A stretch of DNA of 64,000 nt from Ostrea edulis (Eukaryota): the NCBI RefSeq assembly GCF_947568905.1, contig NC_079166.1, positions 60,760,001 through 60,824,000 on the forward strand, in the 5' to 3' direction. Numbering within the stretch: the stretch's first letter is position 1; every line of letters starts with the position of its first letter. This document shows, one piece after another, positions 29,956 to 49,270 of the stretch. The position numbers and the translations under genes are program-made. The notes beneath the pieces were generated by a model, which was not told the DNA's origin, made no database searches, and worked only from the letters and a program-made list of their open reading frames with translations.

Positions 29956-32900
29956 CTATGCTGGTACATATGTCGAATCCATCTCTACTCTACATTTACA
30001 ATAATGTTTTGGACAAAATCCCTGCGTACAGACACTATTGCACCACTGTGAACCGATGGAGTTCATCTTAAATCTCAGGTCCATCGCTTCACACACAATC
30101 CTTCTTCTTACTGGGTGGCAGTTACATGTGCACGTGCCCAATGGACAGAATCCCTGGCGGCAATTAATTTCACACCAGTCATCGTAACCTTGTTTTATAG
30201 ACGAAGCTAAGCCGTGTTTGAATACAGAACAATATCTATCGCATTTCGGTACAGATTTTGGAACACCCTTTACAATTTCTTGAGTGAGTAAGCTGTTTGA
30301 CTGATCCGGAAGTGGACGAGTGTTATGGGTAATAGGAACGTCCTTCGATAGGGAAGCTGGGACACTATTCCCTTTGTCAGCAGCGTGTATGTAGTTTGAA
30401 GGCTCCGGATACAATTCATTGTCTGTTGGGTTGTTGAATGGAATGGCAACGGTCGGGATCAGTTTATTTGTGAGAGCCAGATTGTCGCCTCTTGCTGTAT
30501 CTGCCGACATACCTGTTAGACGAAATTAAGATATTGTAAATATAGCAATGTAACATAACATTTCAGTGGCGGATCCAGTACATTTTCAAAGAGAGAGAGA
30601 GAATACGCCCCAAGTTTGTACCTTTTCCCGCCCGCCCCCCCCCCCCCCCCCAAAAAAAAAACGTGGTTAAAGACTACAAAAATGGCAAAGAATGACCCTT
30701 TTTGTTTTAAATATTCATCTAAAGATGAGTGCAACACCCGTACCCCCACCCACTTGTAGACCCGTCACTGAATTTTGTTGCTTGGATATATACATGTATT
30801 TATATATTATTATATGATCACATTCTTTAATATTTGGATATAAAACGTAAGAAAGGACATGGTGTGTAGGTACCTAGTTTTGACGATGAGCATGAGAGGA
30901 ACTCAGACAATGGTCTGATGGTGGCGTCCACGTATCGTTGGAGATAGGCTGCCGGAGATTCGCCACAGTTTCGTTTTGCTGTCTCGAACAGACAGCTGCG
31001 AACCGCGGAGGCAAGTCTGAAAACAAAACAAAAAATTCTAATTATTTTCATCGACTCAACGGAATCTTAATTCATGTACATCTAAATGATGCTGACTCAA
31101 ATTGGCATTAATGTATGATCTATACATAAATATTGAATCACAATGTGTAATCTTTTTGTGTTCAATTTATAAATAGGCTACTGACCCGCAAAGTTCCTTT
31201 GACATCCATTTGAGCTCCGATAGATCGGACATTGTTAACACAAACGTTCTGATCAGTGTGATGGCCTCTGATGTACATTTCTGCATGCTCTTGTGAGAAG
31301 CCTCACTGAACAGGCAGTGAGCATGTTTAATGTAACCTACGGAGAAAGGAAGATAAGTCAAGGCAACTTTAAAGATATTCCGACTATGTGCTATAATATG
31401 GGAAAGTACATGTACATGTAGGTAGGTATGCGAAATCTACATTTCCCCCTCTTGAAAACGGGCAAATTTACATATAATTGTTATTCAAAATTGGTTATAG
31501 AAACGCAGCGACGCAGATAATCCAGATTGATAAACAAAATAATGAAAATAGAATTTCAGTTGAAATACATGTAAATAAAGTGAAAAAAATTTGAGTTCAG
31601 GAGAATTATTATCAACTTTTCAAAATGTTAGCCCTAAAAACAATTTTAGTGAAAAAATAAGTTAATCATTCTGATATTATTTTTGTCTCGTTATATAGAG
31701 TACCTACCCTGTTTGCCTTGGTTACAGAGGAAGAAGCCCGAGGACTTTGCGGTGTCGTACAGTAGACGGTCGCCTGGACTGCAGGCCGACATTTTGTTTT
31801 CAGTGCATGTAAACACTTTCTGTAGTCCACTGTTAGTAAAATATCAGAATATAGTGATTAAACATTCATCACACATTGACAGAGAGGGACATGAAATCAG
31901 TTAATATCTTTATACAATTAGATGTATTCCGATAGAGATGAAATGAAGAGATAACAACAATGCCACATTTCTTACTACTATTATATTGGGTAATTGTTGT
32001 ACCGTGTTCATTTCGTCCGTACGAAAGGGTAATAAAGTTCCGAATTCACCGAAAACCCTACCTCTCGGAGTACGTAAATTTAGTGAGTGGCTTTAAATTC
32101 ATCCAATTTTGACTTATAGTCAATTTTATTATGAGAGCAAAGGGGACGGAAATAAAACAGTGTTTGTGTTCCGGTATACAGTTGTGAATTACTTACTTGC
32201 AGACATTGTTGACCTTGACAAAAGGTGGAGTATAAGTCGGCGAGGAGCTGGGAATGAGATCCCCCATCGTGGCTGTCATCGGGGACCAGCATGCATTAGC
32301 AGAAGTTATATCGCAAGACTGACTTGAGATACCTGTTTCAGAAAGTAGAATGTTCGATTAGAAAGGGTTTGCGAAACTGACAAATTGTCTCCACAAACAA
32401 TAATCTTAATATACATGAATTTAGCGAACATACCTAACAATTGTGCGTTTTAAAATCGAGTGTTTGTCAGGAAGTTTTTCCTCATTTTTAAAGGAAATAT
32501 ATACTTGTATAACAATCGCCACAATTTTAAAATGAAGTGCGTAAAAATCATGATGATATTAGTACTAATTATTTTACATACCATTAAAAATACTGATGCA
32601 CAACAATATTTTAAGTAGGATCATCGTAGTGATTGTGTTTTGTCTTCAGAACAACGTAGAGTTATCTCTCTTGCTTGTAGTAGTGTGGAGAAGCCTATTG
32701 TGTTCTCTGAATGGCATTCCTGTTGTTTTTATTGAATAGGAAATCAACCAAGCGTGTCTCCTTACGTAAACAATGCATGACATACTTGGACCGCTGTGGG
32801 TTGTTTTACATACGTCCATCTGTCAAAAACATCTCCCCGCTCTGAGGGCGAACATTTAAAAAAAAATACGTCATAGAAGTGAACGATTGAGAAATATTGT

Positions 32901-46858: not shown

Positions 46859-49270
46859 CAGCTTTTTATAGGATTGTATGTGACATATGGAATTATGAGA
46901 GCACGCTTTCTGTCAAGCAGAGGAACAGGTGCTTGGACTTACTGTGATTGCAGGTTACACCTTTCATCAGTGGCTGGATGGTCGCTTCTAGGTAGTGATG
47001 AACAAACTCTTTTGCCGCATCTCCACATGACATTTGAGTTTTCCCTTCTATACAGGTAAACGCCTCCTCTGCCGCGCTGTAGGTACATTATATTATAACA
47101 TTGATTATCATTGGTCAGGTATAAAATTGATTATCATTGGTCAGGTATAAATTTGGTTATCATTGGTCAGGTGTAAAATTGATTATCATTGGTCAGGTAT
47201 ACAGGTTTTAAATAATGGATGCATACAAAAACAATCTTTAGCATTTTTTCCTCATTGTTATTTTACACCGTTTGTCATATTTCATATACACTTGTATGAA
47301 GAAAAGAGTATCAAATATAATGTGCTAAGAGCATTTACCTGCATTTTTGATGCGAAATGTCATAACCATTAGCCTGGGCCTCGCTAACGTTTTGGACTAG
47401 TTCCATGATGTCATTCATACATGACAGAGTATTGTTTTGAAATGATCTGGACATCAGACAGTGGAAATGATTAATGAAATCTGAAAAAAAAATTAAAAGA
47501 TTGATGTCATAAAACTGAAAAGCGTTTTATTTCATTATTGTCCTTTGTGTGTCAGGACCTCGGTACGTGTGCACTATATTACAAAAACCTGAATGAATGT
47601 CAAAGAACAAGGTACGGTTGTATACATAAAAAGGCCCAAAAAAATTCTCTCTATAAAATGTGTCTGGAATTAACCTTAATCAGCGTTTTAAGAAAGTAAA
47701 ATAAATGCCAGGTATACTATGTCAACAAAATCAGAATTATAGTTTTAAATGGATAGCATTATGACATCATGAATAAGGCATTTCCCGCCTTTTTCTCAAA
47801 ATAAGCCTGAAAACTGTCAAATGTCATACAAATTATTGCTCAGGAAAAGATGTGCACATTTGTCGAGCAAAATGAAAATGATATATATTGTGTATTATTT
47901 TGAGATGAAAAACATGCTTCAATATGAATTTGCTCGACGCATGCGCTGTATGTTTCCTAAAAGGAAAACCACCTGAATTTGTGGATATTTCCATTGAAAA
48001 TGGCATTTTTGCAATTTTATGCCAACTTCAAGCTCTCGTCATATGACACAAATCATTTTGCTGATCAAACTGAGTGAATTTTGGGTTTGCTAAACTATTC
48101 CTTAATTGAATGCCAGGATTTGAGCTCCAAGTGAAATCATCAATATTTTGGGCCAGATGACTGTAGAAACTGTACCTACTTCTTTCGATATTTTGACCCT
48201 CCCTCCTCACACCCACACAAAATGGAGTGAATGTCAATTTGAAAGCATTAATGTTTTACCTTTCCAAAAACTAGATAATCGTCAGTGCAACAATATTTAA
48301 AGCATATCACCAACAAATAATAATATGATTAAATTATATAAATCGTAAAATAAAAAAATAATAAAACCTGGGGGGAAAATGCCCAAGCATCGATATTTGG
48401 ACCATGCGTCTTTCCCCAAAAGATTTGCAGATAAAGTTCCGTTATCCTGTCTTGTTTACGTTTCATAGAACATAGAATGTACACAGTGTACTATACCTTG
48501 TTTTCCCTTTGTGCACAGAAATTTTCCTGCAGATATAATGGTGTCTAAAGACAAGGTGTCCACGGACTGACATTTGTCTTTGAACGCTTGCATGCAACGG
48601 TCAAGTTTCTCCTGGGCGCTGTTTTAATAAAAAAAAAATGTTCGAATCAATACACTTGGAATATGAAATTATTCTGTATTTCATATGATGAAAATGATCT
48701 CTAATTCTTTTGGTAAATAGTTATGTACATGTAAAATGAGGAATTTGTCTACAATTTACTACTCCCGTTTCTATTATGCGCATATTCCAATGACGTAAAG
48801 AAAAGCTTTGAATAAAGAAATCTGAACTCATTCTCTAATCAACGTACTTTGTTGACTATAATCAAGTCAACTTAGTGTCATGTACTTGCCTGCAGTATTC
48901 ATCTGCGGCATATTGAGCATTCAGGGTCTTTAACAGTTCTGATGACGCAAATTTCTTAGAAATTTCTGGTACAGAGGACTCGGTCCAGCATTTCAGGACA
49001 CCTTCAATATCACAGGCTTCTATAGGGCTCCCTAAAAGTAAGAAACGTATCAATTAATTTGGAAGGATTACGACTCTAAATAGCCAACCCTTTTCATTGT
49101 GAAAATATTACGTGTACTCATTCTAGATGTAAATACGGACGGATGTCTTTGTTTCAAGGAATGAGGCACAGCGTGTTTGCATAGACTAATTTACAAGATT
49201 TGAAACTTCACTAAATCAATGATAACTTACCTGATAAAATAACAGATGCTATCAGCAGTAGAAACTTCAT
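46287..49270 (-). CDS. Secreted Cys-rich protein with short linker, paralog C (314 aa)
   Basis: Exons (minus) 49270-49231, 49031-48890, 48618-48497, 47480-47339, 47076-46943, 46651-46287; 945 nt open. Intron 2 has a GC donor (AG|GCAAGT). Signal peptide [19 protein letters not shown]; C-terminal [18 protein letters not shown] and [18 protein letters not shown]. Confidence 0.92.
46789..46855. repeat. (GA)n microsatellite in paralog C intron 5
   Basis: Directly visible. Confidence 0.98.
47100..47205. repeat. 26-bp tandem repeat, 4 copies, in paralog C intron 4
   Basis: Unit ATTGATTATCATTGGTCAGGTATAAA. Confidence 0.9.

Follow-up and report, generated by a model that had tools for sequence, protein, structure and literature searches.

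In a 64,000-nucleotide stretch of the Ostrea edulis genome (contig NC_079166.1, positions 60,760,001 to 60,824,000; the window), we identified three tandem genes, here called A, B and C, each predicted to encode a secreted protein that joins a 12-Cys helical head, akin to the nematode CPG4 and DUF19 domains, to a pair of C-terminal Cys-rich modules of the kind found on AA15 lytic polysaccharide monooxygenases (LPMOs), with a spacer of about 21, 95 or 365 residues between them. This combination appears to be undescribed as an architecture, and a literature search returned no paper on it or on these oyster genes, and nothing relevant for the oyster protein K1QLY3, for oyster “proteoglycan 4-like” or for DUF19. 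Taken as a whole, A, B and C may be chitin-anchored, secreted, non-catalytic matrix proteins, a reading to which we give an even chance and in which the anchoring is deduced from the domain partners of the twin module.

Gene structure, splicing and orthologues

The minus strand between positions 29956 and 49270 carries three Cys-rich sets of open segments, which, with exon ends set from GT/AG sites and reading-frame continuity, form three genes of six coding exons each (Table 1). All of their introns run GT..AG, with GTAAGT-like donors and pyrimidine tracts preceding the acceptors; the acceptor of gene A exon 6, at 30512, was picked for its pyrimidine tract and CAG. The three genes have the intron phases 1-2-1-2-1 in common, exon 3 is 122 nt in each and exon 5 is 143, 143 and 134 nt, and the coding sequence sums are divisible by three, giving computed proteins of 383 (A), 650 (B) and 320 (C) residues. 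The original prediction, made from the letters of the window, had proposed three minus-strand genes with these phases and exon lengths, and it was borne out by the GT-AG sites, the reading frame and the orthologues.

Gene B is transcribed. When spliced contigs from two public runs, X1 and X2, which are RNA by guess only, were aligned with positions 37600-41100, all five of its introns were seen as joints (39057/39169, 39311/39511, 39664/40049, 40170/40384 and 40531/40913), each with CT..AC in plus-strand terms, equivalent to GT..AG in the direction of the gene. The exon 1 donor in RNA is 40913, the corrected end, and the alternative GT at 40919 is unused. Spliced gene B contigs had a summed depth of hundreds to thousands (thousands in X2), compared with ~12-22 for the pieces crossing intron 3, contig depth being a poor gauge of expression by the tool's own warning. 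Because intron-less joints occur at all five predicted sites, gene B transcripts are processed, and the confirmation of exon junctions from RNA that had been proposed along with the gene models was obtained for this gene. The X1 and X2 contigs are ~3-4% different from the window and therefore derive from a different population or a closely related species. At 40956, the upstream edge of gene B exon 1, a single X2 contig leaves the genome one base before the ATG and continues with four other letters and then adaptor, and an AG lies just upstream in the genome; this one contig suggests a further non-coding 5' exon joined next to the start codon.

A word search with the last exon of gene B led to a Crassostrea virginica protein named “proteoglycan 4-like” (P0004), and a further search led to a full-length Saccostrea cucullata protein (P0008) of 650 residues, the same length as B. 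Profile searches supplied full-length orthologues of gene A (P0012/P0060, 361 residues, S. cucullata, named “uncharacterized”) and gene C (P0014, 321 residues, Saccostrea echinata). In tblastn comparisons of the orthologues with the window, the matches broke exactly at the placed exon ends, with exon-by-exon identities of 56-79% between gene A and P0012 and of 57-69% between gene C and P0014. The nearest named homologues, at 65-77% identity, come from Crassostrea, Magallana and Saccostrea, and annotated orthologues exist in all three of these oyster genera. A warning that automated annotation could miss or split such genes held in part: P0008, P0012 and P0014 are full-length RefSeq models from Saccostrea, whereas the N-terminus is missing from the C. 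virginica isoform P0004, and K1QLY3 (P0099, 210 residues), an old Magallana gigas model, consists of the head domain only.

All 26 Cys residues are kept across paralogues and orthologues, although the paralogues are only 28-35% identical overall, compared with 57-79% for orthologues. Since A, B and C each have a Saccostrea orthologue and the paralogues are far less identical than the orthologues, the duplications predate the split of these oyster lineages, in agreement with the old duplications envisaged earlier. Genes B and A are adjacent and in the same orientation in S. cucullata as in the window, and no B- or A-like exon was found within 10 kb downstream of the gene C orthologue in S. echinata. 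A match that resembles exon 5, with just 35% identity to the C orthologue, lies upstream of the B orthologue on an S. cucullata contig (L015:2276-2431); it may be one more diverged paralogue or a remnant.

The search for the same architecture elsewhere, suggested at the outset, found it not only in the Saccostrea orthologues but also in two non-oyster transcripts, P0059 (375 residues) and P0053 (831 residues), the latter combining it with duplicated heads and EGF repeats. Both are uninterrupted open reading frames on transcript-like contigs, with heads that resemble those of the oyster proteins at E values of 1e-20 and 4e-13.

Head domain, spacer and twin modules

The N-termini of the proteins are short and signal-peptide-like, and the head that follows has a C-x7-C pair in each of exons 2 and 3 and C-x8-CG in exon 5. 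In an alignment of eight head copies (the A, B and C orthologues and the two non-oyster proteins), 12 Cys residues are invariant and little else is kept, the paralogues being 28-33% identical there. DUF19 is described in Pfam as a secreted domain of about 130-170 residues with twelve conserved Cys, and the head has both the 12 Cys and the signal-peptide-like N-terminus. For Pfam, ESM Atlas and shape comparisons we used orthologue sequences, with P0008, P0012 and P0014 as full-length proxies. Five of six head copies matched Pfam CPG4 (PF15481; E = 3e-5, 0.003, 3.4e-5, 0.0012 and 8e-7), all of them below the gathering threshold of 32.7 bits, and the best scores were 30.0 bits for the second domain of P0053, 24.9 for the C orthologue and 18.5 for the B orthologue. 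Three copies matched DUF19 (PF01579) over nearly the full length of the model, at E values of 0.026-0.9 and 9.7-14.8 bits against a threshold of 23.2. All language-model neighbours of the head in the ESM Atlas were nematode CPG4 or DUF19 clusters (score 0.88, 184-199 of 256 features shared). An AlphaFold (AF2) model of P0008:21-200, made from a ten-row alignment, has ten helices and is all-alpha (predicted local distance difference test [pLDDT] 81.6; predicted template modelling [TM] score 0.77), and its best shape match in the Atlas was a nematode “CPG4 domain-containing” cluster, with a TM score of 0.66 over 165 residues between two predicted structures; the next match scored 0.42. Against the PDB, a sequence search with the head profile gave nothing significant, and Foldseek and VIA-align gave generic helical bundles only (Z at most 6.6). 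From the sub-threshold Pfam scores, the language-model neighbours and the shape match, we conclude that the head is a distant member of the CPG4/DUF19 superfamily, much as the original prediction had guessed in calling it a DUF19-like helical domain.

With the nematode proteins (for example, Caenorhabditis elegans chondroitin proteoglycan 4) the head shares predicted secretion, a length of ~170 residues, twelve Cys and an all-helical fold, the last as judged from predicted structures. It differs from them in its sub-threshold scores and its mollusc host, and in having no known chondroitin attachment; we know of no nematode CPG4 or DUF19 protein that carries twin tail modules. Run over the 895-Mb genome, the head profile found exactly the 12 exons of A, B and C; its sole further match, at E = 0.065, was marginal. 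The Pfam CPG4 and DUF19 models scanned over genome exons gave no match in the window, because the head is split over four short exons; Pfam scans of single exons gave chance-level matches only. The best genome match to Pfam CPG4 lies outside the triplet, at G000:C10:30872148-30872312 (E = 0.043), and has stop codons inside; it could be another CPG4-like gene missed by the head profile, or chance.

Between head and tail, the spacer is free of Cys and consists of 29-36% Ser/Thr/Pro, with ~21 residues in C, ~95 in A and ~365 in B (36% Ser/Thr/Pro). That of gene B is rich in Pro, Thr and Glu and has three Ser-Gly sites, and that of gene A has none. Relative to the window, the X1 and X2 transcripts omit 3 nt at 38508 and insert ATT behind 38992, both in frame and both in the gene B spacer, so its length varies between populations or close species.

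Each protein ends in 14 Cys residues, arranged first in an 8-Cys unit, CxxYC...(W)C-x3-C-x2-G-x-C(P)-x3-C-x-C-x-C, and then in a 6-Cys unit whose gaps are 16/3/4/4/1 in A and C and 14/3/6/4/1 in B. The first module is the core of the second with one extra Cys on each side, and a comparison of the two gene A modules showed them to be homologues (E = 3e-6). The alignments thereby confirmed the Cys conservation originally described for head and tail, as 12 plus 14 residues. The commonest spacing is C-x15-C-x3-C-x4-C-x4-C-x-C, found in 71 of ~95 modules.

When searched against 1.84 billion representative proteins, the tail profile gave 53 matches only. Those with names come from gastropods (Haliotis, Nucella, Littorina, Batillaria and Pomacea), a cephalopod, an annelid, a nemertean and a haptophyte, and the others include marine metagenome clusters; insect proteins were not among the named matches. 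In the 47 matches scanned for partner domains, we found LPMO_10 (five), GH18 (two), EGF (one) and CPG4 (one) and no other, and several further matches start with GCGxQEEFYGCxDI, the strand that closes the AA15 domain. The LPMO_10-bearing proteins (from Haliotis, Batillaria, Littorina, Pomacea and Paralvinella) were found by the oyster-tail profile at E values of 9e-6 to 5e-4. Within the oyster genome, the same profile hit 23 places beyond A, B and C, at least 13 of which follow LPMO_10 exons of the same strand, at a distance of 0.4-6 kb downstream. The AA15 terminal exons were matched at E values of 1e-13 to 1e-4 and read as the AA15 end, a Ser/Thr/Pro linker and one or two modules. The closest tail outside the family, an 8+6 pair at C5:79977493 (E = 1.4e-13), belongs to an AA15-type gene, and the 8+6-Cys version occurs on further AA15 tails (P0046, L007-L009). 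The tandem six-Cys module that the original prediction associated with invertebrate AA15 LPMOs is therefore seen in this genome, in other molluscs and in an annelid, and it is also described for insect LPMO15-1 (PMC9156745).

The genome holds at least 29 LPMO_10 exon matches, of which three, four and four form tandem clusters at G000:C1:78.50-78.52 Mb, C2:67.09-67.14 Mb and C1:24.61-24.75 Mb, respectively, the first two with the Cys module in their terminal exons. A transcript of Phaeocystis cordata (P0022, 1052 residues) and two marine metagenome clusters (P0018 and P0034) have multiple copies of the Cys module and no Pfam domain; since such haptophyte and protist-like proteins carry it, the module is not confined to animals. 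A weak module-like match (E = 0.07) at G000:C8:20116895-20117017 lies in an open frame of 6012 codons, a potential giant exon.

In group I insect LPMO15-1 enzymes, the tail consists of two six-Cys repeats of the form C-X15-C-X3-C-X6-9-C-X4-C-X1-C (PMC9156745, PMC12955341), stated to be unrelated to CBM14 (PMC9156745). Like these and like the molluscan and annelid AA15 tails, the oyster tails place two modules in tandem at the very end of the protein, behind a low-complexity linker, and follow the general pattern C-x15-C-x3-C-x(4-9)-C-x4-C-x-C. By spacing, they have the twin-repeat layout of LPMO15-1, but their third gap is mostly 4 residues, outside the 6-9 of the insect repeats. Profile matches make them homologous in sequence to the modules attached to AA15 domains in non-insect proteins, and we place the oyster tails with the LPMO15-1-type motif. 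Modules of the identical type are found in the GH18 chitinases P0036 and P0049, where one to three of them lie on the C-terminal side of the catalytic domains or separate these domains. Unlike these enzymes, the triplet is without a catalytic domain, and, unlike the AA15 LPMOs, it has the CPG4-like helical domain in the place of the AA15 domain.

Several other identities were rejected. The genes do not encode AA15 enzymes, as no exon or orthologue matches LPMO_10 and the N-terminal domain is helical, and no domain scan gave a match to CBM14/peritrophin-A (PF01607) or hevein. Vertebrate proteoglycan 4 (PRG4, lubricin) resembles only the gene B spacer, in its Pro/Thr/Glu-rich composition; A and C are without a long spacer, and the somatomedin-B and hemopexin domains of true PRG4 are absent (the precomputed Pfam entry is “-” for P0004, P0007 and P0008, and N- and C-terminal scans agree). 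The name “proteoglycan 4-like” mirrors composition, not homology.

For the fold of the module, a two-module AF2 model predicts a beta-alpha-beta topology in both units and places CxxxC inside the helix and CxC on the final strand. Helical CxxxC, an intervening GxC and CxC on a strand are the signature of cysteine-stabilised alpha/beta peptides. The oyster modules share with defensins and scorpion toxins of this fold the six Cys and these motifs, a pattern-level resemblance only, as their loops are much shorter and no sequence or structural match was significant. A PDB sequence search with the tail profile gave nothing significant, and a 55-row single-module profile had as its sole PDB neighbours two scorpion beta-KTx toxins at non-significant E values (0.88 and 3.5). 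Foldseek and VIA-align comparisons of the tail with the PDB gave nothing (Z at most 2.9), and an ESM Atlas feature search on it reached a top score of 0.76, an uninformative level. The domain-by-domain structure search that had been proposed therefore succeeded for the head, through its nematode CPG4 cluster, and not for the tail, which was left without a PDB match; we regard a cysteine-stabilised alpha/beta fold of the module as a lead, not a result.

Functional readings

The family had been put forward as non-catalytic, and indeed it has no Pfam catalytic domain; its conserved Cys count is even. The twin module lies at the C-terminus after a Ser/Thr-rich linker, and, because carbohydrate-binding modules occupy the same position on chitin-active enzymes, its most likely target is chitin. 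It would then anchor the protein to a chitin-containing extracellular matrix, with the shell organic framework, the periostracum or another chitinous layer as candidates, and the spacer would set the distance of the helical head from the anchor. In insects, the twin Cys motif of LPMO15-1 is conserved in all orders examined, and LPMO15-1 enzymes are needed for moulting (PMC9156745, PMC12955341). Here, the module is found detached from any enzyme on conserved non-catalytic proteins, one of them (B) transcribed, and also on GH18 chitinases, which argues for an independent targeting module.

A more specific form of this idea, which we offer as a possibility with clearly less than an even chance, is that the six-Cys unit of ~37 residues represents an undescribed autonomous chitin-binding family with a miniature cysteine-stabilised alpha/beta fold, which shuffling has spread to AA15 LPMOs, GH18 chitinases, EGF proteins and non-catalytic CPG4-like matrix proteins; its range would take in lophotrochozoans, insects and some marine protists. 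On this view, A, B and C would be chitin-anchored matrix organisers whose spacers of 21, 95 and 365 residues place the head at set distances in the assembly of a shell or cuticle-like matrix.

Several points weigh against the anchoring proposal. The chitin targeting of the twin module is deduced from domain partners alone, and the module is also present in marine protists and in proteins where no partner domain can be recognised. The insect papers give no binding assay for the tail motif (PMC9156745, PMC12955341), and the oyster and insect modules were compared by Cys spacing only. The twin-module model has a middling pLDDT of 67.7 and matches no solved structure, and the head falls short of the Pfam gathering score (best oyster copy, 24.9 versus 32.7 bits). 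Finally, splicing is confirmed in contigs for gene B, and the models of A and C rest on GT-AG sites and orthologue matches.

Among the competing explanations, the one that gives the spacer the leading part would make the proteins proteoglycan- or mucin-like cores in the manner of nematode CPG-4, with a heavily glycosylated spacer as the functional element (in hydration or lubrication) and the Cys domains serving oligomerisation or protein cross-linking, not polysaccharide binding. The CPG4-like head would suit such a role, as would the gene B spacer, whose richness in Ser/Thr/Pro and Glu earned the automatic proteoglycan name and which has the three Ser-Gly sites. However, the spacer of C is just ~21 residues long and Ser-Gly sites are absent from A, and both have kept head and tail intact, so that conservation lies in the Cys domains and not in the spacer; together with the missing PRG4 domains, this leads us to consider the explanation improbable. 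We think it somewhat less probable again that A, B and C are mucosal or humoral immune effectors, in which defensin-like twin knots would be antimicrobial or would bind microbes (for example, fungal chitin) and not act as anchors in the oyster's own matrix. The CxxxC...GxC...CxC signature, the predicted beta-alpha-beta topology and the two beta-KTx toxins of that fold as the only, albeit non-significant, PDB neighbours would favour this role, as might the neighbouring AIF1 mentioned in the original prediction, but the module loops are much shorter than those of defensins, structural searches gave no defensin match, and the module keeps company with chitin-active enzymes rather than with immune domains.

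That the three genes are decaying duplicates or chance open frames with no function, as the fragments in a mechanical list of open reading frames might imply, we consider extremely unlikely. The frames are intact over 383, 650 and 320 residues with GT-AG introns, the Cys residues are conserved throughout at 28-35% overall identity, and three other oyster genera have annotated orthologues; for B, the idea is refuted by spliced contigs far deeper than unspliced pieces.

If A, B and C are indeed chitin-anchored matrix proteins, they would be candidate parts of the chitin-protein framework of the oyster shell. The head assignment also extends to molluscs a domain, CPG4/DUF19, that has until now been regarded as centred on nematodes. 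Small natural constructs, such as gene C, suit binding tests, and the head and the module, both without a solved structure, are targets for structural work.

Coordinates and minor features

Table 1. Positions in the window of the coding exons and predicted domains of genes A, B and C
Feature	Strand	Positions	Basis
Gene A exons	-	e1 32624-32582 (43 nt), e2 32332-32197 (136), e3 31829-31708 (122), e4 31336-31186 (151), e5 31016-30874 (143), e6 30512-29956 (557, stop included)	GT-AG sites and phases; match to Saccostrea cucullata P0012
Gene B exons	-	e1 40955-40913 (43 nt), e2 40531-40384 (148), e3 40170-40049 (122), e4 39664-39511 (154), e5 39311-39169 (143), e6 39057-37715 (1343)	Five introns in spliced contigs; orthologue P0008
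Gene C exons	-	e1 49270-49231 (40 nt), e2 49031-48872 (160), e3 48618-48497 (122), e4 47480-47339 (142), e5 47076-46943 (134), e6 46651-46287 (365)	GT-AG sites and phases; match to Saccostrea echinata P0014
12-Cys helical CPG4/DUF19-like domain, gene A exons 2-5	-	30874-32332	Profile match to 12 exons (A, B and C together)
12-Cys helical CPG4/DUF19-like domain, gene B exons 2-5	-	39169-40531	As for gene A
12-Cys helical CPG4/DUF19-like domain, gene C exons 2-5	-	46943-49031	As for gene A
Twin Cys modules, gene A	-	29992-30243	Alignments; 14 Cys, 8-Cys then 6-Cys
Twin Cys modules, gene B	-	37727-37981	Alignments, genome profile search
Twin Cys modules, gene C	-	46335-46598	Alignments, genome profile search

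Two repeats lie among these features. Intron 5 of gene C contains a perfect (GA)34 microsatellite at 46789-46856. Between genes A and B, at 34581-35019, a 30-nt unit is repeated ~15 times (or a 171-nt unit twice) and produces a repetitive open frame, 142 residues long, on the plus strand; this is probably a minisatellite rather than a gene.

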